Source: Podarcis vaucheri (Eukaryota). From it: 64,000 bases of DNA. The number at the start of each line of letters is the position of its first letter. Within the stretch, counting starts at the first letter, position 1. The stretch lies in the NCBI GenBank assembly GCA_965113315.1, contig OZ220378.1. The stretch is one strand, 5' to 3'. The notes below the pieces were generated by a model that did no database searches, was not told where the DNA came from, and saw only the letters and a list, made by a program, of their open reading frames with translations. Positions 22,539-63,829 of this stretch are shown here, piece after piece. The translations under genes were made by a program, and so were the position numbers.

Positions 22539-23112
22539 CATAGCTGTCAAGTGTCCCTTATTTGAAGGGACAGTCCCTTATTCCAGCGCCATGTCCCGCT
22601 GCTGTCCCTTATTGATGGATGTCCCTTAAATGATGTCCCTTAAATTTCAAAGGAAGCAGCTCCTCTCCCTCCCTCCCTGCCGGCCAGGGAGGAGGGAGGC
22701 TCCAACTGTGTTGCTTGGCTGTGTTGCTCACTCAATAAGAAGTCTAAGAACGACTGGGGGGTGGACCTTGCATGCCTTGTGTGTGGCTAGTTAATGCAAG
22801 CTGAGGGGTTTTTTGAATGCTGGACACCATTTTGTTGCACGTGCCGCTGCAAACTTTGCAGTGCAAAGCCAGGCCGGGGAGCCATCTTAAGTTTAGGCTG
22901 CATAGCCTTGTGGTGCATGTGATTCAGATTCTATTCAGTTGAACCTCTGGTTACAAAGTTGGCTGGACAGTGTTCTCAAAGCTACCAGCATGAGTTTGAC
23001 CAGACTGTAGGAGGACAGGAAGACTGGAGTGCCTGGGACAGGTGAGGCTGCAGGTCCCTTATTTTCAAGGCTGCTGATCCCTTATTTTCAAATCTGTAAG
23101 TTGACAGCTATG
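22539..23112. mobile_element. Non-autonomous hAT-type element
   Basis: TIR CATAGCTGTCAA; perfect 8-bp TSD GTTCCTTG; subterminal tcccttatt repeats. Confidence 0.88.
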
Positions 23113-27200: not shown

Positions 27201-30200
27201 GTTTATTGTTTTCACCTTTCAGTAGTTCAGGGATGTTTGCTCCAGGATTTCCTCATGTGGTCAGCTAACACTGGTTTGTCTTGTGTTTCTTACAGTGAGT
27301 TATTTTCTCCATCACAGAAGTATCAGCTTCTTGTATATCATGCAGATTCTCTCTTCCATGACAAGGAATATAGAAATGCTGTCAGCAAGTATACAATGGC
27401 TTTGCAGCAGAAGAAAGCACTGAGTAAAACTTCAAAAGTGAGACCCTCAACTGGGAATGCTGCATCTGCTCCTCAGAGCCAGGTGTTCATAGCTTAAATT
27501 CTGATTATAGCTTGGTGCCTCAGTGCAAGAGTCTTGCATTCACTGTTTATTATACATGGCAAAAGATATGAATTCATTTATATCTGAAAAGTTTTTTTCT
27601 CCTTATGTGAGTTCTGGGAGAAATTAAATATATAATTGAATGTGATTTAACACTCGCCTTGAATAGACAGAATGGGATGGCAGATACTTGGAAGCCTAAG
27701 AAAGATGTTATTGTCTTGTAGTTTTCCTTCATAATGTATGTGGAAAGTGTCCCAGCCTTGGAGTAAACTCCTGAAAAGTAAAGATTACCTCTGACAACCC
27801 CAAGCACCCTACAACACACAACTTGGTCTTTCCTAGATCTTGACTATCCTCTCCATATATCAGGGTGGGGAACTTGTGGCCCTCCAGATGTTATTGAACC
27901 ACTGTTGTATTTTGTATGTTGTCTTCTTAGTGCCTGCCTTCTGAAATTGAAGTGAAGTACAAAATGGCGGAGTGCTATACAATGCTGAAGCAAGACAAAG
28001 ATGCTATTGCTATACTTGATGGAATCCCTTCAAGACAGAGAACCCCAAAGGTAGTACTTTCCTAGCTAAGTTATGCTCCTTGGGAGCCTTTGGCTGAGAT
28101 ATGGATACAATTTATAGGGTTGTAACCAGTGCTGTTCCTACTCAATAAATCCATTGACATCAATGGACCTAAGACAGCCATGTGCCTCGGTGGATCTACC
28201 CTCAGGAAAACTAGTACGGAATACAACCCATTCTTCGAACACCCTTTGGCTGACACAAATCCCCAGGTTTTTTGAATAAAGGTAAAAACTTGCCGTTAAT
28301 AACTGCAAGCCCCGAGAGTTGTGCATCAACAGGTAGAATTAACAGATCCAAAGTGGTGCAAAATGTTATGTCTTATGTCAACATTAAAACATGATTGTTC
28401 TCATCACTGGATTTCTGTGGGTTGCAGATTAACATGATGCTGGCAAATTTGTACAAGAAGGCAGGTCAGGAACGCTCTTCTGTGACGAGTTACAAAGAAG
28501 TGCTGAGGCAGTGCCCACTAGCCCTTGATGCCATCCTAGGTAGCCACTTTTCTTCTGATCAATGATTATTGTTGAAAATTGTGATTGAGACGTTGGCATA
28601 TCTGAACAGTCTTAGCATGGGCAGGTGAACAAAATATGAATTAGTGCAGTCCGCCATTGGCCTCCTCATGAGTTACAACATTAAAGGGGTGCTTGTTATG
28701 ACTGCATATATTGTGTCTTAGAAGACGTAAGGGCTGGGAGAGGCAGTAACGATAGCATTGCAATGCTCTTTCTGATCTGAGGGAGGAGTGTGGTGCTAGA
28801 GATGGCAAGACAATTGGCGTGGATAAGTTTTACAAAATGCATCTGTCTGCAGGACTTGATCACTGTAATCCAGCAGTAGGGAATCTGTGACTCTTCAGAT
28901 GTTGTTGGTGTTCAGTTCTCATTGCTTACCAATGGCCATGTTGGCTGGGATTTAAAGGAGTTGTAGTCCAGCACTGCTCAAAACTCCCATTGTTCTAGGT
29001 GCTTTTTGCCACATGGAATTTCATTAGCCCGAGCAGTTTCTGAGCTCTGGGCGCAGTACTGCACCTAAGATTTCAGATTAAAACTGCAGAGTGGAAGGAA
29101 AGGAAGACCTTTTTCTGCCTCCCCATTTCCAGCTACTCTCTGAAGACTGGAGAAGAGATCCTCTTAAGAATATTAGGGGGGTGGGCAGGGGAAGGACTAG
29201 ATCATGTGAAAAATGAACAAAATATTTTAGTTGCAGTTCATTCATTTTTAGCTTTGTATTCTTGTTATTAAAAAAGCTTGCCTAGACATAGGTTTAAGGT
29301 GCCATTTAGCTCCTAGCTTTCATATCTCAGTTTCTAACACTGATCCAGCAACATTTGGAGGATCACAGGTTCTCCAGTCTTTGGTCAATTATCTGCTGTT
29401 GTCGGTGCCTGAGGACTTAATTTCCTTGCGACTACCAAGAACATTTTGTCAAAATGGTGGTCACAACAGCTGTTGCTTCTCATTTAGGCTTGCTGTCGCT
29501 CTCAGTGAAAGGTGCAGAAGTCGCTTCCATGACAATGAATGTGATCCAGAGTGTCCCAAACCTGGACTGGCTTTCAGTATGGATCAAGGCATACGCATTT
29601 GTGCACACAGGTGATAATACCAGAGCAATCAACACCATCTGGTAAGAATCTAGAGCAAATACAAATGAGCTTTCTCAAAGAACCTCTAGCCTGGTATCTT
29701 GTAAGATATACTACTTGGGTATATCTCAGCCCCACTCACCTCACAGAGTGTTTGTTGTGGGGGAGGAAGGGAAAGGAGAATGTTAGCCGCTTTGAGACTC
29801 CTGAAGGGGAGTGAAAGGCGGGATATCAAATCCAAACTCTTCTTCTCTTCTTATTGAAGGCTGCTTCCCCTTTGCAGCAAGACAGTTACAATGCTAAGTG
29901 TTTGAATGCTTAACAGCTCGTGGAATTTAAATCCCACATATATATGTCTTTTAAAACAAGGATGGGGAACCTGTGGTCAACTATTAGTCATGCTGTTGAA
30001 GGTGCCACAGTCGCTGCCCCCCCCCGGAAGCCAGAGTTGCATGCCTTACCAGGTTGCACAGCTGCAGCAGCGGGGGGCCCCTCCCCTCCTACCATGGGCA
30101 AAGAAGTCTATACCCCTTGGGCACCAAGCTGACCTAGAAACAAGTTGATTGTGGTTGCATTCTTAGTGTTGTTAGAGGAGTGTGTGCGGCCCAAGTAATA

Positions 30201-33200: not shown

Positions 33201-34237
33201 AAAATGCCCATCTTGAATTACTCATTACATTTCAAGCTTTCCATTTTGGCAAGAAGTCATGTGAACTGGAGATGCAGGGTTTTGTCATTTTCTTTAAATT
33301 GATATTTTTTAACGTGTCTCTTTAAAATTCAAAGTGTTTGCAAATCCATAGGTAATTAGGTGGTTTAGAATAGGCATTCTTCCTTCTCTGTCACAGAGAA
33401 CTTCTTGTATATGTCACAGGAAGACACAATCTCGGCATCCTCTGAAACAAACTGTTTCCTCCTCTGAAAACCTAACTGCAAAAAAATGTGTATCTGAATG
33501 CATAATTGCAGAAATGGTTTTAGTTTGCTGGGTGCATAGACTTCTGTGTTTTTTCTTATTTTTATCTTGTTGTGCAAGATAAAAAAAGCTTTTGGCTGTG
33601 AGACAGTCTATACTTCTGCAAATTAAATTAAAGCCTCATACAGTTATTTATGATTTCTTTTTTGGGTGATGGCCTCAACATAAATAGCTTGAAATAACCC
33701 TTCTTATTGACAGGCCGAGAACAGAAATATGAAGATGGAATAGCTTTGCTGAGGAATGCCCTTGCCAACCAGAGTGATTGCATTCTCCATCGAATGTTAG
33801 GGGACTTCCTTGTGGCTGTTAATGAGTATCAGGAAGCCATGGACCAGTACAGTATTGCTCTAAGGTAAGTTTCTGGAAAATCCTGTTGTGATGGCCATGA
33901 GTTGAAGGACGGTTGCAGGAGCTTTATCTGTGGGTTGCTGATAGATGTCAGTGAGCTGAAATGGAGATGTGCATAAGCCAGCCTGTCCTGTTCTTGCTGC
34001 TGCTCCCTGACTCCAGGATGTCTTTCTCTTACTTTCTGTTCCCCCAGTTTGGATCCCAATGATCAAAAATCACTGGAGGGAATGCAGAAAATGGAAAAAG
34101 AGGAAAGTCCAACGGATGCCACCCAGGAGGAAGATGTGGATGACATGGAAGGCAGTGGAGAGGAAGGTGACCTGGAAGGCAGTGACAGTGAGGCAGCCCA
34201 GTGGGCGGATCAGGAACAGTGGTTTGGCATGCAGTGA
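23841..34237 (+). CDS. ANAPC7: Anaphase-promoting complex subunit 7 (TPR protein), complete 565 aa; join 23841-23941,27296-27482,27931-28050,28428-28539,29488-29641,30462-30604,31368-31485,32345-32541,32788-33012,33714-33864,34048-34237
   Basis: Exons sum to 1698 nt; MSVVDHVREMAAAGLHSNVRLL...EAAQWADQEQWFGMQ*. Confidence 0.97.
26325..26585 (+). mobile_element. RTE-clade LINE 3' fragment
   Basis: C-terminal zinc knuckle FICPNCNKTCVSHICLYSH followed by short 3' tail gtctcccgagacagatggatgccaac. Confidence 0.65.
26665..26916. mobile_element. Tigger/pogo-like MITE
   Basis: TA-flanked cagtggtactttggtt/aaccaaggtaccacag. Confidence 0.75.
27296..27482 (+). CDS. ANAPC7: ANAPC7 exon 2
   Basis: ELFSPSQKYQLLVYHADSLFHDKEYRNAVSKY...PQSQ|gt. 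Confidence 0.95.
27931..28050 (+). CDS. ANAPC7: ANAPC7 exon 3
   Basis: CLPSEIEVKYKMAECYTMLKQDKDAIAILDGIPSRQRTPK. Confidence 0.95.
28428..28539 (+). CDS. ANAPC7: ANAPC7 exon 4
   Basis: INMMLANLYKKAGQERSSVTSYKEVLRQCPLALDAIL. Confidence 0.95.
29488..29641 (+). CDS. ANAPC7: ANAPC7 exon 5
   Basis: LLSLSVKGAEVASMTMNVIQSVPNLDWLSVWIKAYAFVHTGDNTRAINTI. Confidence 0.95.
30462..30604 (+). CDS. ANAPC7: ANAPC7 exon 6
   Basis: aag|C TCG CTG GAG; SLEKKSLLRDNVDILGSLADLYFRAGDNKNAILKFEQAQMLDPYLIK. Confidence 0.93.
31368..31485 (+). CDS. ANAPC7: ANAPC7 exon 7
   Basis: MDVYGYLLAREGRLEDVENLGCRLFNISDQHAEPWVVS. Confidence 0.95.
32345..32541 (+). CDS. ANAPC7: ANAPC7 exon 8 (GC donor)
   Basis: CHSFYSKRYSRALYLGAKAIQL...RLDCYE G|gcaagt. 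Confidence 0.92.
32788..33012 (+). CDS. ANAPC7: ANAPC7 exon 9
   Basis: LIECYLASNGLREATVMANNVYKTLG...KKAELL A|gtaag. Confidence 0.95.
33714..33864 (+). CDS. ANAPC7: ANAPC7 exon 10
   Basis: REQKYEDGIALLRNALANQSDCILHRMLGDFLVAVNEYQEAMDQYSIAL. Confidence 0.95.
34048..34237 (+). CDS. ANAPC7: ANAPC7 exon 11
   Basis: LDPNDQKSLEGMQKMEKEE...WFGMQ TGA. Confidence 0.95.
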
Positions 34238-35539
34238 AATCGCCTTCCTGAACTAACCTGGGACCATAGCCCTTGATGAGTGACACCCAATAAGACATTC
34301 TTCTCCCTGGAATGAAGAATGCCAAGGGGGCACTGTGTGCTGCTGGAAGAACTGGACTGAGGCAAGATCCAAGCAGCCCCTTCTGTCCCTTTTTTGTTTC
34401 TACGTTATGCTTTCGGTGTTCCTTATTTCATGGTGAAGTCTGAGCAACTTAAGTGCTGGGGAGGCATTCGTGCCAAGCAGCAATTTTGAGTTCTTATTTC
34501 TAAAATTAGAAGCTTTCAAATGATATAAAGCATTTTTCAAACATTTGTTAATGACTAAAACGATGTCAGAATCATGTTGTAAACTAATTATGCTTGATCC
34601 CCAGTGGTGCATAAATGTAGGCTACTTTTATATCCTTTTATAAAAGAGGCTTTATTCGCAAAGCCTGTACGGTGTCGTTAGATACACAAACTCCTCCAGA
34701 AAGCTGCTGGAATCTCACACAGGGGCAGTACATTTCTTTCCAGCCTTTTCCTGGCCTCCCCAGTGTTTTTTGTGGAGGATATTTAGCGTGCACACTCTAA
34801 AATAGAAGCATGCTGCTTCAGGCTCCTAACTGATGAGGAATTCTATAGCTGATGAATCCATATACACAAGAAATTGTGGCCTGTGAAATAGTTGGTTATT
34901 TTCACATTCTGTGCTAACAAGTGCCACTCCTTTTAAGCCTCTGTAAGGATATTAGAGAAAGTGAAATGGAGCAGCGTTGAGGAAATTACAGCCAGTGAAA
35001 GGTTCTTAAGGTTACTTCTTACTGGGTAATACCAATTAACAATATCTAAACCACATAATCCTTTCCTGCATACATGACTATTAAAAGCAGCCTTGCTAAC
35101 ATACTGTGCTTCTGACTTTGATTTGGCTGCATTAAATAACTTCCTCAAAGCACAGTCCAGCAGCAGTTTCTGTTGGGTGCCCCATCTGCACAAGACCACA
35201 GTGCTGTGTTCTCTGTTAAGTAATTATTTTTTTAAATGATGTGGCCTTCCCTTTCACAAGGGTGGCTAGCCTGCAGCCCTCCAGATGTCGCACTCTCAAC
35301 TCCTATCATCCGTAATTGACTCCATCAGCTTGAAGCAGATGGAAGTTGCAACATCTGGAGAGCCATGGGTCCCCACCCTTCTCTTTTGAATCACAGTAGA
35401 ATTTGAAAGACCCCATGTGTCTTGATCACCTGCTGAAAACTACTAATACTACCAAAGATTCAGGATGGAAAAGGTTGTTGATACTGTTATAGGGTTCTTG
35501 TGAATGGAGATACAACATTACCTGTACAGAAACATTCTT

Positions 35540-36742
35540 AGAATCATAGAGTTGGAAGAGACCACAAGGGCCATCGAGTCCAACCCACTGCCAAGCAGGA
35601 AACACCATCAGTGCACTCCTGACATATGGTTGTCAAGCCTCTGCTTAAAGACCTCCAAAGTAGGAGACTCCATCACACTCCTTGGCAGCAAATTCCACTG
35701 TCGAACAGCTCTTACTGTCAGGAAGTTCTTCCTAATGTTTAGGTGGAATCTTCTTTCTTGTAGTTTGGATCCATTGCTCCGTGTCCGCTTCTCTGGAGCA
35801 GCAGAAAACAACCTTTCTCCCTCCTCTATATGACATCCTTTTACATATTTGAACATGGCTATCATATCACCCCTTAACCTCCTCTTCAGGCTAAACATGC
35901 CCAGCTCCCTTAGCCGTTCCTCATAAGGCATCGTTTCCAGGCCTTTGACCATTTTGGTTGCCCTCCTCTGGACACGTTCCAGTTTGTCAGTGTCCTTCTT
36001 GAACTGTGGTGCCCAGAACTGGACACAGTACTCCAGGTGAGGTCTGACCAGAGCAGAATACAGTGGCACTATTACTTCCCTTGATCTAGATGCTATACTC
36101 CTATTGATGCAGCCCAGAGTTGCATTGGCTTTTTTAGCTGCCACGTCACACTGTTGGCTCATGTCAAGTTTGTGGTCAACCAAGACTCTAGATCCTTTTC
36201 ACATGTACTGCTCTCAAGCCAGGTGTCACCCATCTTGTATTTGTGCCTCTCATTTTTTTTGCCCAAGTGCAATACTTTACATTTCTCCCTGTTAAAGTTC
36301 ATCTTGTTTGTTTTGGCCCAGTTCTCTAATCTGTCAAGGTCGTTTTGAAGTGTGATCCTGTCCTCTGGGGTGTTAGCCACCCCTCCCAGTTTGGTGTCAT
36401 CTGCAAATTTGATCAGGATGCCCTTGAGTCCATCATCCAAGTCGTTGATAAAGATGTTGACTAAGACCGGGCCCAAGACAGAACCCTGTGGCACCCCACT
36501 AGTCACTCTTCTCCAGGATGAAGAGGAACCATTGATGAGCACCCTTTGGGTTCGGTCAGTCAGCCAGTTACAAATCCACTGAGTGGTAGCATAGTCAAGA
36601 CCGCATTTTACCAGCTTCTTTACAAGAATATCATGGGGCACCTTGTCAAATGCCTTGCTGAAATCAAGGTAGGCTACATCCACTGCATTCCCTTCATCTA
36701 CCAGGCTTGTAATTCTGTCAAAAAACGAGATCAGGTTAGTCT
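35540..36742 (-). mobile_element. CR1 LINE, 5'-truncated, RT C-terminal half
   Basis: [39 protein letters not shown]; one frameshift near 36180; CR1 3' end ...CCAACTCTATGATTCT. Confidence 0.93.
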
Positions 36743-38150
36743 TGAACACAGGATGCCAGATGCACATTGATACAAAGAGATACTTTAGTTCAGATAAGGG
36801 AATAGTGCTGGTACAATGGAAATGTATTGCTTTCTCTTTAAACAGAAGAAGCACCACTCTTCCCCCCTTTCCACAAACCATTTTGGAAATTGGAGGAGAA
36901 TGTCTAAAATCACCCTTTGCTTCACACAGTTGGTTCATGGTTCCAGGCCCAGTAGATAAATGAAAGGGAACAATGGCTTGTCAAAATCAGTTTGTGGCTA
37001 AGATGAGATTTGAATTGGGGCCTTTCCCTGTTTGTGATGCCACTCCAGCTCTTGTGATCACCCACCACCAGCAAAACCAGGCACACAATTATTTGCTAGA
37101 CAAGCTGCTGATTTTCAGTGTGTGGGCATTCTTATTTTCGGGGGGGGGGGGAACTATCTTAATTGGAGCATGTAAATTAGTTGTCCATTGTTATTTATAT
37201 AGTACCATTACATTACAATGGTTCATAAAACTCATCAACAAGGAAGAAAGCACCCTAGTCCCTGGTCTGTGATTTTTAAAAATTATTTCACTTATGAACT
37301 ACTTCCTATGAGGCATCCCACAGTAAAACAAAAAAAATATTTTAAAACAGTTGTGCATGTAAAAACAGTTCTTTAAAATTAATTGTATATATGAAATGAA
37401 AGCAGTTTAAAACAAGAATAGCGCATAGTTCAAATCAATTCAGATCCAATGCTGATAAAGAGCTCCAGCTAGACATTTTGCTGGTTGAAACTTTGCTAGT
37501 GGTGTAATGAATATACATGCAAATGCAGTAAGTTCTGTGCCACCCTTTACACACCCTCTCATAATGTTAATCTTTATAAAAGGGAAAGGAGGATGAGGAA
37601 GACAGCTCATCACATCCTTTTGGAAGAAGACTCTTAAGAAAAATGGTGCATAAAGGGGACTGCTGAGAGGTCCTGGGGAGAGTGGAATTCAGCTAGTGGG
37701 ACTGCTGCTAGTGAAGAATGAGGAGGCCAGGGTTCCTGCTCCCGTCATAGTTGTGTGGAAGAGGGAATCTGCATCCACCTGCCTTGTACTCTGGCCTCTT
37801 TCAGCTCACCTGCAGGAGACCATACAAAAAGGAGTGTGCCTATGTCCTGGACTGTGGAGACCCAGAAGACACTTAGAGCAAGGACAGGGAACCTTTTTGG
37901 ATGAGCAGCCCACCCCTGCAGACCTATTTTTGATGGGTGAGACAACCCACCTGTCTTTGGCCTGACTTGGTGACACCAGATGATTGTTTGGCAGATTAAG
38001 CCCACTCACATGTAAGAAGGCCTTCAAGCACTGATCTTTAAGTGCCTTGACAGACAGCCTGGGAACCACACTGCACAGTTATAAGTGTCGGGCCGCCAGA
38101 GCTGCTGGCTGTGCAAATGAGTTCCCACTGTAGGTGTTTGACGCGGAGAA

Positions 38151-41100
38151 TAATAATAAATAATAATAATAATAATAAATTTTATTTATATCCCACCCTC
38201 CCCAGCCGAAGCCGGGCTCAGGGCAGCTAACAACAATAAAACAGTGCAAAAGTACAGCACAAACAACACTCTAAAATCATTCATTATAAAATTAATTAAT
38301 TCAAGCCACTGGCAACCATTGGGCCAGAGCTCTGCGAAGATTGCCGAGGGAGGGAGTCAGGCTGTGCCCTGGCCAAAGGCCTGGTGGAACAGCTCTGTCT
38401 TGCAGGCCCTGCGGAAAGATGTCAAGTCCCACAGGGCCCTGGTCTCTTGGGACAGAGTGTTCCACCAGATCGGAGCCACAGCCGAAAAAGCCCTGGCTCT
38501 AGTTGAGGCCAGCCTAACTTCTCTGTGGCCTGGGACCTTCAAGATGTTTTTATTTGAAGACCGTAAGTTTCTCTGTGGGGCATACCAGGAGAGGCCGTCC
38601 CGTAGGTACGAGGGTCCTAGGCCGTATAGGGCTTTAAAGGTTAAAACCAGCACCTTAAACCTGATCCTGTACTCCACCGGGAGCCAGTGCAGCTGGTATA
38701 GCACCAGGTGAATGTGATCTCGCAGCGAGGACCCCGTAAGGAGTCTCACTGCAGCATTCTGCACCCGCTGGAGTTTCTGGGTCAGTCTCAAGGGCAGACC
38801 CACGTAGAGCGAGTTACAATAATCCACTCTGGAGGTGACTGTCGCGTGGATCACAGTGGCTAGGTCAGGGCGAGAGAGGTAAGGAGCCAACTGCTTAGCT
38901 TGGTGGAGATGGAAAAATGCCGCCTTTGTTATAGCTGCAATCTGCGCCTCCATGGAAAGGGAGGTGTCGAAAATTACACCCAAACTCTTAACGGACGGTG
39001 CTGGCACTAACTGTGCCCCCGCAAGAGATGGGAGTTGCCCCCCCCATCCCATATCGTCCCGTCCCAGCCACAGGACCTCTGTCTTCGAAGGATTTAGCTT
39101 CAACCGGCTCCCACGTAACCATCCAGCCACAGCTTCCAAACATCTGGTCAGTGTGTCTGGGGCCGAGTCAGGATGGCCATCCATCAACAGATAGAGTTGG
39201 GTGTCATCGGCATACTGATGGCAACCCAGCCCAAAACTCCGAACAATCTGGGTGAGGGGGCGCATAAAGATGTTGAAAAGCATTGGGGAGAGTATCGCAC
39301 CCTGAGGTACTCCACACACCAAGGAGTGGCGCGATGACAATTCGCCCCCCCCAAGTGCCACCCTCTGTCCCCGACCAGAGAGAAACGAGCGCAGCCATTG
39401 AAGGACTGTGCCCTGGATCCCCACGTCGGCAAGGCAGTGGTCCAGAGGTTCGTGATCGACCATGTCGAAAGCTGCTGACAGATCTAGAAGAATCAGCAGC
39501 CCTGACCCGCCTCGATCCAGCTGTCTACGAAGATCATCTGTTAGGGCAACCAGAGCCGTCTTGGTCCCATGACCAGCGCGGAAGCCGGACTGGAATGGAT
39601 CCAGAGCCGATGTTTCATCCAGAAACCCACCAAGCTGTTCAGCAACCGCTCTCTCAATCACCTTACCCAGGAACGGAAGATTCGAAACCGGGCGGTAATT
39701 GGATAGATCTAAAGGATCTAATGATGTTTTCTTTAAGAGCGGGCGCACCACTGCCTCCTTCAGTTCCCCTGGGAATGTCCCCGTGCCAAGGGACAAATTG
39801 ATGATATCCCCCAGGAGGGCCCGCACCTCGTCTGGACACACTCTAATCAGCCAAGACAGGCACGGGTCGAGAGGACAGGTGGTGGGCTTTCCAGCTCGGA
39901 GGAGTCTGTCCACATCGGCTGGGGATATCCGGTCGAAGTGGTCCAATACTGGACCTGAGGACAGTCGAGGGGCCTCCAGTTCCTTTATTGTATCCAAATT
40001 GGCAGGGAGGTCATGGCGGAGCAACAAGACCTCCGCAAAAAAGCTCGCAAATGCCTCACAGCTGTGTGTCAAATTGTTATTTAAATTTGGCTGTCCCTCA
40101 AGGGACATTAAAGACCTGATTATACTAAATAATTGCGCTGGGCTGAGAAGTATGACTTCTTAGCAGCCTTCACCGCCATCTCGTAGGTTTTCATAAAAGC
40201 CCTATAAGATGTTCTTGAGGCTCCGTCACAGGCACCCCGCCATACTCGCTCTAGCCGTCTGAGGTCCCGCTTCATTTTCCGGAGCTCCTCGGTAAACCAG
40301 GGAGCCCGGTTTCTGCGGGGTCGCAGAGGGCGCTTAGGTGTGATCTCATCAATGGCTGCCAGGAGCTGGGTATTCCAGCCCTCAACAAGCTCAGTCAATG
40401 AGTCGCCAGGGGGAGCAAGGTCCTGTAAGGCTTGGCGGAATCTATCAGGGTCCATCAGCCTCTGCGGGCGAGCCCAAATCGGCACGCCACCTAAGCGGGG
40501 GGTGGGGTGGAAAGTCAATCCTGGCTTTCAGAGCGTAGTGATCGGACCATGGCACCTTCATTGAAGGAGACATGATCACATCTATACCTACGCCAAAGAT
40601 CAAATCCAGCGTGTGGCCTGCTTGATGTGTGGGGCCCGAAACAAACTGGGAGAGCCCTAGTGTCGCCATGGAAGACACCAGGTCCAGAGCCTGTGAGGAG
40701 GGAGTGGCATCAGCATGGAAGTTGAAGTCTCCCAATACCAATAGGTTAGGGAACTCCAAGGCCCAGCCGGCCACCGCCTCCAATAGGCCTGACAGGGTGG
40801 CTGCTGGTGCGCTAGGTGGCCGGTACACCAGCCAGACAGCCAAGCTCACCTCGGAGCCCCACACTAGGCAAACACATTCAATGCCGGGAATCGATGGCGA
40901 TGGTAGAGCCCTGAAAGAACAATCTTCCCGGATTAATAATGCCACCCCTCCCCCCCGGCCCACAGTCCGCGACTGGTGGAGGACGGAGAAACCCGGGGGC
41001 ACCATCTCTCGTAAGGTAACTGTTGCCCCTTCGCGCACCCAGGTCTCCGTCACACAAGCCAGGTCGACCCCCTGCGAGATAAATAAATCTCACAGGGTGG

Positions 41101-41837
41101 CGGTTTTATTGCCTATAGACCTGGCATTGCACAGCACCACTGACAGAGGTGAGTAATCCTTGCTCACCCTACCCTCGTCCCTCGGGATGAGGCACAGATT
41201 GGAAGGGGTACGAGCATATCCATATCTCGATCCCCTTCGCCTATAACATCTGCCCCCACCGCCACACCTCCCTCGCCCCTCCACGGTAGCAATCCCAAGC
41301 CTCATAGTAGCCTCCATTGATGGCAATTAATGTTATTCTTTCTCAGCCTAAAACAATAAAACCTTAAAACCTTAAAACAATAAAAACAAAAAACAAAAAC
41401 AACCCAGAAAACAATAAAACAATACAAATAAAAACTGCAAAAATTACAAATTCATCAAAATCTAACAAATTCCCAACATCCATCCCACCCACATATATAA
41501 AAAATCTAAAGGGAAAGGAAAATATTTTTTTAAAAAAAACATGTTAAAAAGAACTCTGCACCCCTCTGGGTCCTCCTGGGCAGTAGCAGCATCAGTGGCA
41601 ACAACCATCCTTGTGAGGCCCCACCCTGGGCCGATAGTAAGTGTCAGGAGCAGTCCTTGTGAGGCTTCAGGCCCCGCCCCGGGCCAGGTGGTAAGTGGCA
41701 GGAAGGAGCAGGGCCCTCAGGCACTCGCACAGGGGAGTCCTCCTGGGCAGCAGAGCAGTCCTTGTGAGGCTTCAGGCCCCGCCCCGGGCCAGGTGGTAAG
41801 TGGCAAGAAGGAGCAGGGCCCTCAGGCACTCACACAG
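38151..41837 (-). mobile_element. L2-clade LINE, near full length, endonuclease + reverse transcriptase, disrupted
   Basis: ORFs 41090-41326, 40445-41053 (TETW, YRPP, GDFN, SDH), 40120-40518, 38357-40108 (GVPQG, YADD, LHWLPV); (TTA)n 3' tail; candidate TSD GGAGAA at 38145 and 41838. Confidence 0.92.
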
Positions 41838-41840
41838 GGA
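41648..41840. repeat. 105-bp tandem repeat (~1.8 copies) at L2 5' end
   Basis: gagcagtccttgtgaggcttcaggccccgccccggg at 41648 and 41753. Confidence 0.9.
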
Positions 41841-41999
41841 GAAGAACAAGACAGCCACAATTCATCTGTATCCCATAGTTTCATGAGAACTGCTGTTAAT
41901 TGATGTGTTTTCCTTCAAGCCAGCCTCCCTCTGGTTTGAAAACACAAGCTGTAGTTAAGCTGGCCATGTGCATTTTATGCAAGCACTGCACAGTGCAAT

Positions 42000-42185
42000 G
42001 GCAGTGTGGCATAGTGGTTAGGGTGTCAGGCTAGGACCTGGGAGCCCAGGGTTTGAATCTTCACTCAGACACTCACTGAGTGACCTTGGGCCAGACATTG
42101 CCTCTCAGCCTCACAGGGTATTGGTTGTGGGGGAGAACCACATAAATGACATTGAGCTCCTTAGAGAAAATGGTGGGATATAAAT
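42000..42185 (+). mobile_element. MIR/CORE-like tRNA SINE (second copy ~22110-22290)
   Basis: gcagtgtggcatagtggttag...ctaggacctgggag...gagtgaccttgggcca...ctcagcct. Confidence 0.65.
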
Positions 42186-45100
42186 GCAATCCATAAATAC
42201 ATTTAGCTGGTGTTCAGGGCTAGGGGTTGCTGGCATGGAAAAACACAGCAGGTCATGTGCATCACCCCTGCCTTCCTCTCGGGTGCACAACACTGCTACA
42301 AAGAAACCTGAAATGCTGCTGGAGGGGCAACGGTTAATGTGTCTTGAGTCTGCTCTTAAAACAAATGATATTAATTGAATTGCAGGCAGCTGCGCTTTCT
42401 CCAGGGAGCTGGGTTTGGATCTTCGATTTCTGTAAGCCTTTTAGAACTAACAGGTGAGGCTAATAGAAGTCTCCCTTGAGGCTAATATTCCTGAAAAACA
42501 ATACAATACTGGTGGGTGGTTTGCACTGTCGATAAGCACTTGCTCCTAATGTCTCTAGACTAGCTGCCTCCAGAACTGCTAATGATGGATTTAATAGCTT
42601 TTTAATGCTCTACACGGAAGGAGCGTTGGAAATTTCACTGCAGCTGGTGACGGATGTTTATATCATGAAATCCATCATTAAAATTACTGCCAGCCTTCCC
42701 TTCTCCCTCCAGCACAGCAGCAGAAAGGGCCTTAATGGACTTGCAAAGGCACTTTCCCTTGTCGCAGAATCAGCGGCTTTCTAAATCTTTCCGTAAGGCT
42801 CCAAGGTGGACACCTGACCCAGGACTGTCTGAGCACTGCCACGTCAAAAGAAACAACAACCCCCCAAAACCAAAGCCAGATAGCTAATAATAAAACAAAA
42901 CAAAACAAAACACTTACTGATGACAAATGTATATATTCCCTCAGCAAAGAAATGTGAATCCTTGGCTGTATTTATTGGAACCTTAAATAGAAACCCTTCT
43001 ATATAAGATAGGGATGGAAAACCTCCTGTCTAGGACTAAATGCTCCCCTACAAGTTGTCTCCCAAGGCCCACACCTTCTCTCTCAGGGCCCCGCACCTAA
43101 CAGGTCTTGCTTCTCACCTTCTCATCAGGTGCCTTTGCCTGTCATGTTATTGTCCTGGTTTCATTTTCTTGCTTGAGCTCAGAGAAGCAGCGGGGAGACG
43201 GATGGGACTTAATTCCAACAGTAACCTGCCAAAGCCGGATCTAAGGCAGTACTACCTGTTTGGGTGCACCAGGCACAGTGATTCTGGGATGCTGCAGCAG
43301 GAACTGCAGCCATGAAGTCCAATAGAAGGCAAGAGGGCTGCTAGATTTTGGCGTTGCACAGGGTGCTGCTGGAGTTGGTGATGCCAAGGTTCGCCACTGA
43401 ACCTGGGACAGGTAAATGGAACAGATTGTGAATGTATGCAACTGTGGTCACTTTAAATCTAAATAATAAATGAATTAGGTACATGGGGTTATTCAAAAGG
43501 ATTAATGTTTGAAAGATGCATTTATACCCAGCATTTTTGTTTCACAGTCCACCAGGAGAGAAGGGCTGTAGCTCATTAACAGAGCAGAGGCTTTATTTGT
43601 ACAAGGTCCCGGGATCAATCCCTGGCTGATATGGCAGCTGCTCTTACTAAATTCCTGCCTGAAACCCTGGAGAGATGCTGCTGGCAGTTTATTAAAAAGA
43701 AGCTCCACCCCAGGAGCCGGCAGGGGTTGCTGCGCCGCTGTCTCACAGGGTTGTTGTGAAGATAAAACAGGGATGGAGAGAACGGCATATGCTGCCTTAT
43801 GCTCCTTGTCGGACAGTTGGGATATAAATGTGATGAATTATTATGATGGGATGATGTTGAGACTGTGGCAGTTTGCTAAATAAATAGAAGAGCTAAGATA
43901 TGGTTCACAACAATTAGCCATTATGTTATTCTAGCACTCTGGTTTTATTTTATTTTTTAGCATGCGCATGTGTGTGTGTTTGTGTGTGCATGCGCATGCG
44001 CACCCGCACACTTTAAAGAGTGAAAAACCACTGAAATGCTTGAAATGACATTAATGGAAAAATATAGCCACTTCTCTTCTGTTCTGTAATTTGATGTTTA
44101 ATTGTGATGTTATTTACATGTATTGAATTATTATAGTATAAAATAGATAGAGAAAAACATACCCAAACTTCAAAATTCCTTCTGCCACCTACAGTTACAG
44201 GTAAGTACGCATCTTCCTTCTTATTGCTTCCTGATTAACAGCTGGTAAACTGTGGGCCAGACTCTGGAAAATAGAAAGTGAGAGAGGAGGAGGAGGAGAA
44301 CCGGTTAGATTTCTAAGAGTTTACCAGAGAACAGAAAGTACTATTGCATCAAAGCCAGCTTGGCTAGCAGACAGAGGTAAGCAACCCACAGTGTGCTTTC
44401 AGGAGTTTGGAACATTTCCCAGCTGGGATCCCAGGCTTAGAAAGAGTTTAGCAGCTGGCAGGAATTGGATGATTCTATTGGCAGCCAATCCAGAAACCTG
44501 GCACTGATAGAGGCTGTGCGAAAGCCCAGATCAGGTAGGGGATTTAGTTTCATGGAGCTTTAAGAAATGCTATCGCCTCAATGAGCTATTTCTTTTCATC
44601 CCAGCATAACCAACCGCCCCATTTGTCAATCAACAGACAGCACTTTATTGACTATACCGTCATAATAAATACCTTATATACAGCTGTTCTTGCTCCACAG
44701 TTGTGGTACTCCCTTCCTTTCTAAAGGACTGCCCAAGTAAAAAAAGGGGGGGCATGCAATTTACTTTTCAGACTGGCATTCAGAAGTCTAAAGTCAGGGA
44801 GGCGGAGCATACGAAAACAGTATAACGAGGTGTTTATAGGATACAATGCATGTGTTTTACCTGTTATTTAAAAAGCCCTGGGGAATGGGCCACCTAGAAA
44901 TTGAATTAAGTGATTTATTAGCTTATTATGCACAGAGATTGGCTGGGAAGATCCACTGAAGATGTTGTGCTGGAAACAATGGTAGCTGGTGCATGTTAGA
45001 ATCAAGAGGGCAGAAGGCAGGCAACCCAAATGGTAGGTGGAGCCAGAGCCAATGAAAAGACAGAGTCAACTATGTGCACCTTGCAGCTTGGGTGAATTGG

Positions 45101-46399
45101 ATTGAAAAGATCACTTACAGTTAATGGAGGTCAAAGGCTTTATTCATGCAGGAACTATTTACAGGATGAGTGACAGACCAGGCCCACTGGTGAGGCAAGG
45201 TGAGGTGCCTACCTTGAGCAGAGGAAGCAAGGTGAGGTACCTGCCTCTGCCACCCTCCCCACTGCCTCTACTTCCAGTAGTGGCACCAGTTTCTGGAGAG
45301 ATCTTTCAATATCTAGCTGGAAGCCAGTGCCACTGCTAGTGTTTCCCAACTGTTTCCGTGCAGCACAGTTAAGACAGGTACGGCGGCAGGGCGGCAGTGA
45401 AGGGTGATGATAGCAGAGGGTGCCAGCATGTTCCCATTTCACTTAAAGTGGTGAAACAGAATGTGCCGCCCCTGCTAAGTGAAGCTAAGAAGAATAAAAT
45501 AGTAGGCATGTTGTCTCAACAAGTTGGGAGAGAACAATACACAAAATGGCTTAGCCTTTTAGGGGTGGAGTTAACTTAGAGAGGCTACAAGCAAGTGCTG
45601 GCTAAAATCCAGGAGAGCCATAATAAACAATATGGCTGTAAAAGTCTAGGATCCAATTTTAGGCCTTGCCTGAGGCAGGAGCCTGTTCTGCTACTGTGAT
45701 GACCATTCTCAATGCCTCCATTTATTCTCTGTTCACACAAGGTGTGAAATATCTAGATTGGGAGCCTCAATATTAAATAATTCCTGCTGTGTGGTTCCTT
45801 CTAAGCAGACTGTCCAAAAGGTTACCATGGTATTCTCCTCTCTGAAATGAACATTTAAATCCAAAGAAGAGAAGAGAAAGATGAAGCTATTTGCAATTAA
45901 GAATTAGCATCAGCCAAATGATCTGGAAATTTCCATGGAACAATACCATAAAAAGGAAAACTGCAAGTCAAGGTGGGGTGGGGGACATTGTTCAACATTT
46001 CAATGCCTCTCTGGCTACTGAATTGCAAAACACCAACTTAACTCTGCAGTATGTTTAGAGGAGGGAATGTTTTGGGAACGCTTTATTCCCACTCCATATC
46101 CATTTGCTGCTCTGTCTGCCAAGGATTATCATTGACAACGACAACAATGGTGAGAATTACCTCGGATTATTTAGCTTACTTCTTAGCTGCAAGGGCCAGG
46201 AAGATTTGATCCTTTAACCCCTAACTGTCATAATTGGCAGCAATGAAAAGGACAAGAAAATTACAAATGTAGTTGGGTGTATGTGCAAAACTATGCACAT
46301 TGAGGCAAAAATATAAATGACGTCTATGACAATGGGGGTCTGAGCAAGCAGGTTCGCACTGAGCACAAAAGGGATTGTGGGGTCAGGGTAGGCAGGTCA

Positions 46400-46640
46400 A
46401 TAAAAGTGTTGAGCCAGTGTGAGGCAGCTGTGGAAAAAGGCAAATTCCATGCCAGGGATCATTAGGAAAGGGATGAAAAACACAGCTGCCAATGTTGCAA
46501 TGCCATGACTAATGCAATCCCACTTGAAATACTATGTACACTGCACCTCAAAAAGGGTATTTCAGAACTGGGAAAGGTAGAAAAGAGTATCTAAAATGGC
46601 TGAAGGTCTGAAGCAAATCTCCTATGGCGAAACAGGGTGG
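46400..46640 (+). mobile_element. Degenerate CR1 fragment
   Basis: gagccagtgtgaggcagctgtggaaaaaggcaaattccatg...cacttgaaatactatgtaca resembles CR1 ORF2 SQQC..AAKKAN/HLEYC. Confidence 0.6.
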
Positions 46641-46937
46641 AGATAAAGTCACTAGGAAGCTGGTGGTAAGGATTAGACAATAATGTGTGAATTGTTTTGA
46701 ACAGTCTGGTATGCCTTATATATTCTATGTGGGGGGTATTGGTTTTGTTTGTTATTGTGTTATGTATTTTTGTGTTTAATATTCTAAACTGCCCTGTGAT
46801 CCTTGGGTGAAGGATGGTACAGAAATGTAATAAATAAGCATAATACAACTTGTGCAAGGAAGCCGGTAAAACGTGGGTTGAACAAGGTAACTACTAGGTG
46901 GATTTGTAGCCAGTTAACTGACTGATCCCAAAGAATG

Positions 46938-47452
46938 CATAGCTGTCAAGCGTTCCTTATTTGGAGGGACAGTCCCTTATCCCAGCGCTGTGTCTCGCTG
47001 CTGTCCCTTATTGATGATGTCCCTTAAATTTCCCGGGTTTCAAAGGAAGCAGCTCCTCTCCCTCCCTCCCTGCCAGCCAGGGAGGCTCCAACTGTGTTGC
47101 TTGGCTGCGTTGCTCACCCAATAAGGAGTCTAAGAACGACTGGGGGGTGGAGCTTGCATGCCTTGTGCCGATCAAATTGGCCATGTTGCCTGGGGACTCG
47201 GCTTTGCTCAGCGCTTCCCAGCGGAGAGGGGGTGGTGGTTTTCCTTGCTGCATCCCCTTTGCCAGGTTGCTGCGCTGTGGGAACCACCGCTTGAGGCTTC
47301 GTTTGGCTGCTGGCTGGGCTTTCTGCCTTTGGCTCAGAGGGGCTCAGAAGTCGAACATACCTGCGCTCTGAAAATCCCTTATTTTGGCTGCTGATCCCTT
47401 ATTTCCGAGGCTGCTGGTCCCCTATTTTCAAATATGTAAGTTGACAACTATG
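46938..47452. mobile_element. Non-autonomous hAT-type element (same family as 22539)
   Basis: Same TIRs and shared 5' ~250 bp; flanks caaagaatg/caaagagtg. Confidence 0.85.
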
Positions 47453-47522
47453 CAAAGAGTGCCTGTCTTTATCCTGCTCTTCCCCTCCTTGCAATGCTGC
47501 GTCTTTCCTCCCTGCTGTCCAG

Positions 47523-49153
47523 AGCCTTGACCTGGGGGGCCACCAGCTGATCCACGAGGGGCATCTTCGCTTGCACACCACCCAGAGGAAGACTGTGGGT
47601 CAGTGACTGGCCAAAGCTAGCCCTCTTGGTGGGGAGGGGGATGCACTTCCTTTGAACAGGAATCAAAGAGGGGAGAGGCTGTGGCTTAATGGAGAGTTGG
47701 CGAGAGGGAGCTGGGTGCACCAAGGGAAGGGAAGAGAGGAAACCACACCATCTCTCTCTTAGGCCTGTGTGTGCTGCTCTTCATGGACCTGGTGGTGCTT
47801 CTGGAATGCCACAGGAAGGGGGCACAGAGCCCCTCCTTCAGCCCCATCCTCCCTCTGAATGAGGTCCTCCTCTGTCCCACGGCCACAGGTAAGAAGGGAA
47901 GCCACACAACCATGTTCCTCCTCACTTAAAGAGTACTTAACCTGTAAAGCTGCACAGGCCAGCCCTGCTGTGTGGATGTTTCTTCCATCTTGTCTCTCTT
48001 CTCTGCATTGCTGTACCTGGGCCCACACTCCTGGTATGTGTGTCTATCATTCTTAACTACCTGCCCTTCACTCACAGGTCCCAGGCACGGGCAGAGAAAG
48101 GGGGGTGCGAGGGTGCAGTCTGCTCCAGGTGCCATCCGGGGAGGGGACATCGCCACAGCCCCCCATGCTCACTGCGCCCCCCATACGCTCACCGCAGGCA
48201 GTGGGAGGCTAGCAGCACCCCAACACTCACCGCACGGGTGGCGGGCGGCTAGGGAACTCCGGTCCACTCTGGGTGCTGGAGCAGGTATCTCCGCCTCTGC
48301 TCCCAGGTTGGGTTACAGCAATGAAATTAGTTTAAAACAACCTACTAGCACAGAAATGGGATGCATAGTTTATGAATCACCTTAAGGGTCAACAGCCCAG
48401 GTAAAGACATAGCTACCCACACTAGCTCAGTGTTGTGTTGGAACCCCCTGGAGAAAGATGCTGCCGGAGAGTCACTCAGCTCTTCTCCTTTAGAAAGTCT
48501 CTCTGTCTCTCTCTCTTCCCCTCCCTTTTCCTGGCAAGTGGCTGGAGGATCTGGAGGGGGTCACAAAGAACGCCTGCAGGCAGCCCCCCCAAGGCCCAAC
48601 TGCACCTTCCAGGTGAGGGAGACCTCCACCCTGATGTTTCCTTCTGAACTCAGGGGGGCGAAGGGTTACTTGCACCACACACTCCACCAATGGACATATT
48701 TGCTCCTCTTTTTTTAGGATGCTGGTGCTGGTCCAACATCATGCTGTTTCCATTCCTGTGACTCCAAGGAGAAGGAGCTAGAGTGGGGCTCCTGGCGAGT
48801 TGTTGGAGGTGGCTGGGTGGGTGATGATGGTGGCAGCCTCAGTGGTCAAAGTTTGAGGGTGGCAAGGCATGATGGAAGTATCCTCCCCTCCTCCCCCTCC
48901 TCCTAAGATCTGGGAGGGGTCAAAGCCCCCTGCCCCCCATTGCCTTCTTCCTCTTTTGGACCTTGGTGGAATGGCTTCCTTTCTCCCCTCCCCAGACAGT
49001 AAAATGGTACCCCACCTCTGCCATGCCTGAAATTAAACTGCTGGTGGGAGGAGGACAAGAATGACAGTGAGGAGGATGAAGAGCATGAAGATGACAAGGA
49101 GGAGAACCAGGAGGAGGAGGCAGAGCTCTTGGTCAGGCAACTGCTGCAGGATG
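47523..49153 (+). pseudogene. Intron-containing relic of an RGS-RhoGEF (ARHGEF11/PDZ-RhoGEF-like) gene, PH-domain exons
   Basis: Exons 47523-47598 SLDLGGHQLIHEGHLRLHTTQRKTV; 47763-47888 (G)LCVLLFMDLVVLLECHRKGAQSPSFSPILPLNEVLLCPTAT; 48539-48612 WLEDLEGVTKNACRQPPQGPTAPS. AG/GT borders; recalled ARHGEF11 reads SLDLTTRKMIHEGPL.../DLHVLLLEDLLVLL...CHSK...FSPVLKLNAVLIRSVAT/WMELLEEAVRNA. In-frame deletion, stop and transposon insertion indicate decay. Confidence 0.75.
48086..48299. mobile_element. GC-rich hAT-like MITE
   Basis: Imperfect TIR cacgggcagaga/tctccgcctctg; TSD (g/c)tcccagg. Confidence 0.6.
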
Positions 49154-50267
49154 GCGAGGCTTATTTTTTGTGCCTGCCTTTGCCAGGGCGAGGGGGGCTC
49201 TATGCAACTGCCCTCATATCCAGACAAAAGAGGGAACTGCTGCTGCCACGGCCCACTTTCCTCTCTCCCCCAGAACCTTCTTCTTGTTATTTTTTACAAC
49301 AATGAATACCACAATAAATATTAAACAGTAGTATACGTATCCAGTAGTATACGTATATATAGTAGTATATGTTTGTTCTGTCCACTGAGCTATGCCCTTC
49401 CCCATGTTATAAAAATTATAAGGTGTCAGAAATAAAATGAATGTTCATAAAGAATACTTAAAGCAATACAACAGTCAGATAAATTTCCAAGTGGGGCTAG
49501 ACATATGAGCAGCAGTTAAAAACAACTAGAGTGTAAGATGAATTAAGAGGGGCAGTAATGAAGGAAATTCAGCTAAACAAGGATTAAATAAGAACCCATG
49601 GAGGGATGTGTGGGGAAGTCGAAGAATGATGATCGCTCTAAAGTGCATGTATGGAAAATGCATACAAAATGAATGTTCATAAGTGCACAATGTAAACACA
49701 CATAAGTACATAAACCACATATGTTAAATATTACAGGAGAGCAATCCTGAAACCATCTAGACTTTCTTAAGGACCCCAAATATTTACTCTGCTGTAGAAA
49801 GGACTATCTTGGGAAGAACCTTTCCCAATAGTTATTTTCACTTACAAATCCTTCAAATCCAGTCAAAATAGCACGTTTTGTGTATGAGCAGGGGAGGTTC
49901 AGAAACAATTGGTAGTTACAATTTTCAAAAGAATGACCCAGACGGGCCAAGAAAAGGCAATCAGGAAACATTATCAGGTATCTTGCTTGACGGACAGGAG
50001 ACAAGACACACACTCAAATTTCTGTTGCATTTCTGCCTCTTTCTGTGATATTTATATGATGCTTTTGGGTGGTCTTTGGCTAAGGGTTTGGGCAATTTCT
50101 AAGCCATTAAAGTATGTTACACACCTTTGTTCTGGGTCCTCACCCGCAGCGGTGGCGGGGACTCAATTGCAGCAGAAAAAAATAGTATCTGCCTTGCTTT
50201 GACTGCTTCCTGCCTCCATCAATTCTTCTCTGACTAATAAGAGGGGTAGAAAGCTATGCATGGTAGA

Positions 50268-50490
50268 AGAAGAAGAGTTTGGATTTGATATCCCGCCTTT
50301 CACTCCCTTTAAGGAGTCTCAAAGCGGCTCACATTCTCCTTTCCCTTCCTCCCCCACAACAAACGCTCTGTGAGGTGAGTGGGGCTGAGAGACTTCAGAG
50401 AAGTGTGACTGGCCCAAGGTCACCCAGCAGCTGCAGGTGGGGGAGTGGAGACGCAAACCCGGTTCCCCAGATTATGAGATTACCACTCTG
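50268..50490 (-). mobile_element. tRNA-derived SINE with (CTT)n tail (3' fragment of same family at ~29723-29850, +)
   Basis: Two copies share ctcagccccactcacctcacagag...gcgggatatcaaatccaaactcttcttct. Confidence 0.7.
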
Positions 50491-50944
50491 GTGTGAGTTT
50501 TCCTCCAATTTGCATAATACTAGAATCCAGGGTCACAGAGTTCTACAGTGTTAACAACAGATCCATTTAAAGCACACCCAACAAGGTGGATGTACAGGTT
50601 ACAGAGGCCATCCCTCATACGGCTTGCAATTATTAAAACAAAGCAAGTCTTGGTCAAACAGTTAAAATACAGCTGTAAAAAAAGAAAAGAAAAAAGAATT
50701 CCTTGATTCATGTGGGTACAAATAATACTGCCACACACAGCCTGCAGCGCACAGCAAGGGACCGTGAGACCCTGGGCAGGGAGCTGATGGGACTTGGGCC
50801 ACAGGTGGTTTTTTCATCACTCCTTCCTGTTGAAGGTCGTAGCCCAGGAAGAGAGAGGAAAATACTCTGATGTCTTTAAATCATGGAGATTTAATTGAGT
50901 GGGTAGAACTCATACAATTATTTTGTTTGTGTGAGCTCTACCAT

Positions 50945-51018
50945 GAAGGTGTTTCCTGCTTGGCAGGGGGTTGGACTTGATGGCCCTTGTGGTCTCTTCC
51001 AACTCTATGATTCTATGA
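50945..51018 (+). mobile_element. CR1 3'-end fragment
   Basis: Nearly identical to the 3' tail of the 35540 element, ending ATGATTCTATGA. Confidence 0.8.
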
Positions 51019-53515
51019 AGCCAGTGGCTGGTGCCCATTGGGACTGGTAGGGCAGAATATAGGGAGACTGACAGTAGACGGCACCAGAACCAACTCATTT
51101 TGGCCCCTTCATCCCTGATGAGGGCAACACTGAGGAGGAAGTTGACAAGGAGTGACCTCCCCCTGGAGAAAGGAGGCAGGCAGAAGATTGGTGGGCCATT
51201 CACCCTGCTGGACCAGACTCCACTACAGAAAGCACTTTACAGGTTAAGTACTCTGACTTGGGAGGATGATTATTTCACCACACAGAAAACTTCCTGTGCT
51301 TTAAAGATTTTAACGTCTTGTGTATGAACAGTTGTACACTCTTTAGAAAATTAAATAAATATAAATATAAATATAAATATAAATAATTCAGTTGGGACAC
51401 AAGATGGTTTGCGTCTCTCACTTTTTTTATACAAACAATGGAAAACATTTTTTGTTTTGTTTTGAAAAAGGTGATTATATAGAGGTTGTCTTCTAACACA
51501 CACTCTCTACCCCAGTCATGCCACACTCCAAGAGGAACGCTATGTAGTTCTAAGAGGAAGAAGTGTTGCCTTGGCATTGCTAGGAAATCGTGCGCAAGTA
51601 ATGCCACAAACTTAAAAGTGTGAAGAGCTTGGAAGGAAATCTCACTGGAACCGATGTCACAGATCCAAAGCAGCAGCACCCAAGGGCTTGGGCCTGTGTT
51701 AAGTGGCATTCTCTTTCCTTTGAATGACATGTGCATAGGCCATATCACAAATGGGGTTTGAAGTCCTCTTCAACTTCAGAGGGCATTTTCTCTGCAACGT
51801 GCCGTTCTAACAAGCCCAATTCAAAAGCTTCCTTCTTTGGTTCTTTGGATCCCAGCCAGTGCAATGTGCTTTTATTCCTGAGAGCCAGCCAATCCACACA
51901 TTACATAGAATGAAAAGCAGAATTCTGAACTCTCCCACCTGAGCCTGTGGTTGGGATTTCATAGCTCTGAATATTCTCCCATGTAAGAAAAGCTCCCTAA
52001 AATGGGAACTGGGCTCGACTTAAAAAGAAAAGAAAAGCACTCTCTCAAAGGACAGTGATGGCCAAACTCGGCCCTCCAGATGTTTTGGGACTACAACACC
52101 CATCATCCCTAGCTAGCAGGACCTAGTGGTCAGGGATGATGGGAATTGTAGTCCCAAAGCAGTTGGGCCAAGTTGGCCATCACTGTCATAGAGGATAGAG
52201 TTCTCAGTGGCTCCCAGCCACAAGGACTACATGCCACCTACAGGATCAGAGGCAGACTGGCTCCGAAGGCTGGGAATCTCAGGTGGGAAGAGTCCTGCTC
52301 CACTCAGGCCCTGCTGGCCAGTGTCCCAGTGTGGAACCTGGTTGGCCACTGAGAGAACAGGCTGGTGGGATGGATGGGTTACTGGCCTGATCCAACAGGC
52401 TGGTCTCTCTCTTTCTGAATTTCTAGTTCAGTATATAAAAGGAGCAGACATCTTTTGCTTTAGTATGCAGGGAACATTAAAAATGTGCACTCTCCAATAG
52501 TTTGAAGCAGTGAAGTCCAGAATCCTACCACCTTACTCTGCATCATGTGCAGGACAGGCTCTCAGTAAACGTGTTTAGAATTAGCTTACAAGGAAGCCTG
52601 CGTGTTCCTAAACAGGACTAAATGCATATCCAATAAAACACACAAACTATGTATCATAGAATAAGTTTATTTTACCCGAAACCAGGATGGCAGGTGTGAT
52701 GCTTGTCACCATCAGCATTGAATCAGACAATGTTATTTACAACTTCTAACAAAGAAAAAAGGTCACACATGCTGTTTTATGAACTAGGTTCATTATTAGG
52801 CTTTTGTTGTTAAGATAAAATGCACCACAACATGTGTATTGCACCAGTGTGTGTCTACGGCTTTAGATTTAAATAAGTTACATTATTACAGTGCAAAATA
52901 GACCTATCTGCACACTCCAAGATATTTTTTTTTAAGCTGAAGTTATGGAATTGAAGGTTTAACAGTTTCTTAAACGTTCAGCAACAGTACCGTTGTCAAC
53001 GAACCTGTATAAATAGAATTGCATATTGTACAGAGCTGTTTTTAAGTGTTATGTTGAGATACAATAGAGATTATCAGCTACTTACAACTGAAAGCATGCA
53101 TTACAGTCCAATATTGTACATTTTATAAACTATGACATTTTACACAACGAAGTATGGAAAGAAAAAGAAAAAAGATAAAACTTGGCGAATCACCACTCAT
53201 TAATTCTTGCTCAGCAGTTTAGGGAGACTTGTCTTCATGCAACCCCAAAACTTCTTCGCAGAGGTCTGTTTTATCAGTTAAAAACCATATTGCACATTGG
53301 TAGATCTGTATATAAACTGAAGCTTTTTAAGAGCACCACACACTTCCTTCGTGGAACACGAGTTTTCAGTTCTATTTTTTTCTCCCTCCTTAAGGAGAGA
53401 TTTTTATTTTCCCATTTACAAGACTCATGCAGATGTTTTCGGTAGATGCGTTCCTAAAGACGCATGCAAGAAAATTAACCTTACAATTCTGCAAAATTTG
53501 TCTAGGACTAAGTGA

Positions 53516-63829
<10,314 letters not shown>

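Follow-up and report, generated by a model that had tools for sequence, protein, structure and literature searches.

A probable unprocessed pseudogene fragment of an ARHGEF11-type RhoGEF PH domain between ANAPC7 and ATP2A2 in Podarcis vaucheri

In Pfam, the family PH_16 (PF17838) represents the PH domain found in exchange factors of the Lbc/RGS-RhoGEF group. Besides that of ARHGEF11, the PH domains of LARG (ARHGEF12), p115 (ARHGEF1), AKAP-Lbc, GEF-H1, p114, and p190RhoGEF likewise belong to PH_16, and structures of these further members are in the PDB as well. The three known RGS-RhoGEFs lie in the 1q23/19q13/11q23 paralogy group, the fourth region of which is 3q13 and not 12q24. The family links G12/13-coupled receptors to RhoA and is counted as having three members (PMC9700851). 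Activated RhoA is bound by strands beta5-beta7 of all seven Lbc-family PH domains (PMC5988292). Here we describe a short run of exons in Podarcis vaucheri (assembly GCA_965113315.1, contig OZ220378.1) that resembles part of such a PH domain and that probably represents an unprocessed pseudogene fragment, judged from sequence, and not a hidden working gene.

The ANAPC7-ATP2A2 spacer and its exons

The window, by which we mean the whole stretch of 64,000 nucleotides that was analysed, is free of N and carries GPN3, ARPC3, and ANAPC7, all on the + strand, followed by ATP2A2 on the − strand. We take this gene order to be that of human 12q24.11. The genes were located from the following pieces.

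696-956, + strand: GPN3, piece with a match to ATP_bind_1 (Pfam)
17696-17821, + strand: ARPC3, piece with a match to P21-Arc (Pfam)
34235-34237, + strand: ANAPC7, stop codon (PDB 4ui9_X, E 5e-27)
near 60884, − strand: ATP2A2, end of the SERCA2b tail exon (PDB 7e7s_A, E 5.5e-45)

The last coding exon of ANAPC7 reads through what looks like a donor at 34166 and continues to the stop, after which AATAAA signals occur at 35080 and 35131. ANAPC7 and ATP2A2 are convergent, and the exons of interest lie in the spacer between them, as the preliminary description of this DNA had claimed and as the PDB matches of both genes confirm. The spacer measures ~17 kb when the ATP2A2 3′ end is taken at the ~52.6 kb given in that description. 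It contains three segments on the + strand that could be read as consecutive exons.

47523-47598, + strand: PH exon 1, 76 nt, phase 0 to 1, SLDLGGHQLIHEGHLRLHTTQRKTV plus one leftover base
47763-47888, + strand: PH exon 2, 126 nt, phase 1 to 1, (G)LCVLLFMDLVVLLECHRKGAQSPSFSPILPLNEVLLCPTAT
48539-48612, + strand: putative PH exon 3, 74 nt, phase 0 to 2, WLEDLEGVTKNACRQPPQGPTAPS

The translations proposed earlier for the three segments were reproduced exactly, and the proposed phase match of the first two holds, with exons 1 and 2 joined in frame through the split codon G/GC (Gly). The intron between them is 164 bp long, and ~650 bp separate exons 2 and 3; the three exons together amount to only ~90 codons. 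Each of the six borders is a canonical AG or GT, and a pyrimidine tract precedes every acceptor, again as described before. When scored against all 4594 AG and 3403 GT sites on the + strand of the window, the acceptor and donor reach percentiles of 99.6 and 92.4 for exon 1, 97.7 and 99.5 for exon 2, and 96.1 and 99.8 for exon 3, which places the six borders within the top 0.2-8% of such sites. These scores are approximate, coming from a simple position-weight matrix built on consensus frequencies. The three exons are internally devoid of stops and frameshifts, and reading through past each donor leads to a stop after 2-13 codons. We note that decoy "exons" with fair flanking splice sites are frequent in the ANAPC7-ATP2A2 interval.

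The spacer is also rich in repeats, of which three bear on the arguments below.

35608-36938, − strand: second reverse-transcriptase LINE fragment
38357-41053, − strand: LINE with an intact 583-aa reverse-transcriptase ORF (RVT_1, E 2e-36)
46936-47452: interspersed-repeat (transposon) copy, 88% identical, in two blocks, to 22537-23112

The LINE at 38357-41053, in which two more ORFs (132 and 202 aa) precede the reverse-transcriptase ORF on the same strand, may be a young element. The transposon is unclassified and about 520-580 bp long, and its other copy lies shortly before the first ANAPC7 exon; the spacer copy ends 70 bp upstream of exon 1, within the would-be upstream intron, and holds a 20-nt internal tandem repeat at 47374-47413. 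The 3′ end of the repeat carries AAATAT/GTAAGT, a mimic of a splice donor.

Several smaller repeats were observed in the window. Beside the LINE at 38.3-41.1 kb, a GC-rich 105-bp unit stands in tandem at 41648-41839 (98% identity), adjoined by an A-rich 8-bp microsatellite at 41349-41424. A 123-bp stretch of the spacer (50268-50390) recurs in opposite orientation at 29724-29846 within the ANAPC7 span with 97% identity; the latter copy probably sits in an ANAPC7 intron, and the pair is probably a recent repeat insertion. Downstream of the SERCA2b stop of ATP2A2, the Rfam model RF00005 has a tRNA-like match on the − strand at 58041-58099 (34.8 bits, model positions 8-63), which probably marks the head of a tRNA-derived SINE.

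Resemblance to Lbc-type PH domains

The exons were searched one by one in Pfam and the PDB. The sole Pfam match of exon 1 is PH_16, at E 0.038 and 14.3 bits, which falls under the Pfam cut-off of 22.8 bits for this family. The match covers profile positions 10-33 of 128 and corresponds to strand beta1 and the beginning of the Lbc-type PH domain. For exon 2, the best four PDB matches are all to the DH-PH module of ARHGEF11, in four distinct sequences (1xcg_A, 5jhg_A, 3kz1_A, and 3t06_A; E 0.18-0.23). The alignment spans chain residues 283-325 and has one 5-residue gap; of its 38 aligned residues, 18 (~47%) are identical. The residues in common include CH.K, FSP.L.LN.VL, and a final AT. Among solved relatives, exon 2 found ARHGEF11 alone at E<=10 in the PDB, where no solved structure of another Lbc-family PH domain was matched within that limit. 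The fragment looks closer to ARHGEF11 than to the other members of the Lbc family, a statement about likeness in sequence that is not a phylogenetic placement. The halves of exon 2 returned nothing from Pfam, and the first 13 residues of the exon may resemble the strand that precedes residue 283 in ARHGEF11.

Exon 3 gave no match in Pfam or the PDB, including when trimmed versions were run against Pfam. It begins with the Trp typical of PH domains and would form the C-terminal helix; its likeness to ARHGEF11, proposed in the preliminary description as well, is putative. The earlier proposal that the segments follow the order of the ARHGEF11 PH domain stands for exons 1 and 2, whose order is borne out by database matches, and is putative for exon 3.

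Taken alone, each match is at noise level (PH_16 E 0.038, PDB E 0.18). In Pfam, each batch of 150 unrelated pieces returned 18-27 families at E<=1, with noise families reaching down to E 0.003-0.07, and unrelated control pieces gave PDB E values of 0.8-2. PH_16 itself was matched by one of the 150 + strand pieces of a first batch; it was absent from the families listed for a second batch of 91 + strand pieces and from the 25 (of 27) families listed for 150 − strand pieces. The parts of the domain matched by exons 1 and 2 are consecutive, and the two exons, which share a strand and have 164 bp between them, join in phase. From the PH_16 match of exon 1 and the ARHGEF11 match of exon 2 combined, each below threshold, the homology to RhoGEF PH domains that had been claimed for the locus is upheld at the level of the family. 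We accept the fragment as a likely homologue of the Lbc-type PH domain, with ARHGEF11 as its nearest solved relative.

Searches of larger sequence collections returned no credible relative. Exon 2 yielded one match among 1.84 billion protein representatives, P0001, a repeat protein whose match is compositional and which we set aside as spurious; the representatives stand for clusters at 50% identity, so the lack of a close match is weak evidence. Neither a 79-aa + strand piece around exon 2 nor a − strand ORF overlapping that exon had a homologous protein among those of 0.55-1.75 times the query length, a range that leaves full-length RhoGEFs outside. A metagenome scan with the 79-aa piece also found no relative, and literature searches turned up nothing relevant on a fourth RGS-RhoGEF or an "ARHGEF11-like" gene.

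Missing parts of the domain and of the gene

Between exons 2 and 3, the PH frame requires a further exon of phase 1 to 0 encoding strands beta6-beta7. In a by-eye, nonexhaustive search for phase-compatible AG...GT pieces, this exon proved missing or unrecognisable, and only one weak candidate was found. Beyond exon 3, one possible continuation was noted.

47963-48033, + strand: weak beta6-beta7 exon candidate, 71 nt, phase 1 to 0, (A)LLCGCFFHLVSLLCIAVPGPTLL
48718-48781, + strand: possible next exon piece after exon 3, R-MLVLVQHHAVSIPVTPRRRS, then a stop at 48779-48781

The beta6-beta7 candidate has a good donor (CTG/gtatgt, percentile 97.7) and an acceptor that has no pyrimidine tract and scores at percentile 42.8; it has no Pfam match. 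A GC-rich stretch with repeated "gctcaccgc"-like motifs occupies 48078-48306 on the + strand, between exons 2 and 3; it may be inserted DNA by which the missing exon was disrupted or displaced. The downstream piece opens at a strong acceptor (tttttttag/G, percentile 99.6) and likewise has no match in Pfam. The frame set by exon 3 stops 21 codons beyond that exon, at 48779-48781, and AATAAA signals follow at 49313 and 49320. A 100-codon open frame at 49003-49302 on the + strand, ~400 bp past exon 3, contains an acidic low-complexity run (EEDKNDSEEDEEHEDDKEENQEEE) and matches no family; it was left out of the fragment, given that a stop comes just after the nearest strong in-frame acceptor.

As far as the sequence can tell, an intact PH domain could not be made from the segments. 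For its known function the domain relies on the very part that is unrecognisable here, because RhoA binds beta5-beta7 (PMC5988292) and beta6-beta7 is missing. The shortened exon 2, the unrecognised beta6-beta7 exon, and the stop at 48779-48781 agree with the decay of the domain that had been reported. That exon 2 is shorter than its ARHGEF11 counterpart also agrees with the preliminary description, but the deletion of ~14 aa given there, from its own alignment, compares with a gap of only 5 residues in the HMMER alignment.

For the rest of a RhoGEF gene, the + strand from 36700 to 52497 was cut into 241 stop-free pieces (150 + 91) of at least 24 residues, or at least 20 within 41.9-49.4 kb, and each was scanned against Pfam. 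No catalytic DH domain (RhoGEF, PF00621), no RGS-homology (RGS-like) domain, and no PDZ family was matched by any of the 241 pieces, a result that tells against the earlier claim of a whole RGS-RhoGEF gene at this locus. The same scan detected single exons of ARPC3, GPN3, SERCA, and ANAPC7 as a positive control. It is insensitive to diverged exons, having picked up just one of the three PH exons, and degraded DH exons could escape it; the absence of DH, RGS, and PDZ exons from the interval is accordingly suggestive. On the − strand, 150 pieces from 41.1 to 54.1 kb matched noise families only, and Rfam matched nothing in the ANAPC7-ATP2A2 interval.

An upstream coding exon or start codon for the PH exons was not found in the interval. 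One candidate "exon 0" at 47338-47435, with good splice scores, an end in phase 0, and an ENPL motif, was rejected because it lies inside the transposon copy; the same GTAAGT recurs in the other repeat copy, at 22.5-23.1 kb, and the PDB matches of the candidate are unrelated, none being to a RhoGEF. A stretch at 46466-46591 that appeared DH-like by eye had no Pfam support and was dropped; BLASTP against the LINE ORF of the window gave no confirmation of the alternative, a degraded CR1 LINE tail.

Origin of the fragment and comparison with known systems

The reading that we consider probable is that the locus is an unprocessed pseudogene fragment, made up of two database-supported exons and a putative third, stranded in the ANAPC7-ATP2A2 spacer. 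Such a fragment would be inert as an exchange factor, because no DH, RGS-homology, or PDZ domain was found upstream and the PH domain is incomplete, and we infer that it is dead. It is not a retrocopy, because the segments are separated by introns; the kept introns and the canonical splice sites at all borders agree with the genomic, nonretro copy that had been proposed. It could have arisen when part of a RhoGEF gene was copied at the DNA level. It could also be all that is left of a full gene worn away by deletions and the insertion of transposons. We lean slightly toward the partial copy.

One point speaks against a long-dead relic, namely that six splice sites and three frames are intact despite an identity to ARHGEF11 of ~45-47%. 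Because neutral drift should have broken some of the twelve AG/GT bases or one of the frames, selection probably acted on the exons until fairly recent times, within a divergent paralog at this locus or elsewhere in the genome, or else they are still spliced into some transcript.

These considerations bear on the rival explanations. The one that survives best, although we regard it as rather unlikely, is that a complete extra RGS-RhoGEF paralog once sat between ANAPC7 and ATP2A2, that the exons are its last remnant, and that it may be intact in other non-mammalian vertebrates. The introns, phases, and good splice sites are kept as this explanation would have it, the ~47% identity of exon 2 to ARHGEF11 is more in keeping with an old paralog than with a young copy of ARHGEF11, and the transposon and LINE insertions could have displaced or destroyed upstream exons. 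However, the Pfam scan of the 241 + strand pieces left no trace of DH, RGS-like, or PDZ domains in the interval, and a transposon copy directly precedes exon 1. From the likely ANAPC7 end to exon 1 there are ~12 kb, of which some 5 kb is LINE, very little room for at least 25 upstream exons. The lack of a close match of exon 2 among the 1.84 billion representatives points the same way, weakly in view of their clustering at 50% identity. As a further lead, the paralogy of the known family members does not make 12q24 the expected fourth region. The more specific proposal that the exons are a remnant or a still-spliced piece of an unrecognised fourth RGS-RhoGEF paralog, intact in some non-mammalian lineages and lost in mammals, strikes us as quite unlikely.

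We judge it improbable that the exons are alive, spliced into an unannotated transcript that encodes a small partial-PH protein or serves as a non-coding RNA. The splice percentiles of 92-99.8 at all six borders, the open frames, the strong acceptor at 48718, and the AATAAA signals at 49313 and 49320 downstream of the stop would suit such a transcript. Against it, the interval offered neither an upstream coding exon nor a start codon, 47338-47435 being inside the transposon copy; the middle exon required by the PH frame has a sole candidate with a poor acceptor (42.8); and no matching protein was present in the collections searched.

A chance resemblance of ordinary intergenic reading-frame pieces to a PH domain is very improbable, for although each match by itself lies at the level of noise (E 0.003-0.07 for noise families in the Pfam batches of 150, E 0.8-2 for the PDB controls), and the interval has many decoy "exons" with fair splice sites, two independent libraries each gave as their top match the family that had been predicted beforehand, in colinear, adjacent, and in-phase exons, and we roughly estimate the joint probability as far below 1e-6, from ~1e-3 for a PH_16 match in ~390 pieces and ~1e-5 for a PDB top match in the corresponding part of an Lbc-type PH domain.

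As a probable pseudogene fragment, the locus makes a small annotation point, in that an orphan RhoGEF PH fragment in an intergenic spacer will be missed by gene finders and ORF lists. With its unusually well-kept splice sites, it may also exemplify the reuse of leftover exons in a new transcript. Should an intact gene exist at this position in other vertebrates, the RGS-RhoGEF family would gain a fourth, lineage-restricted member.

Set beside the PH domain of ARHGEF11, the fragment is colinear in exon order and strand, but its identity is only ~47% and its scores lie under the Pfam threshold. Unprocessed pseudogenes and DNA-level partial copies likewise keep introns, comprise a subset of exons, and show internal losses, an early stop, and nearby transposon insertions. 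Unlike in the usual unprocessed pseudogene, the splice sites here are unusually well kept for the divergence of the protein.
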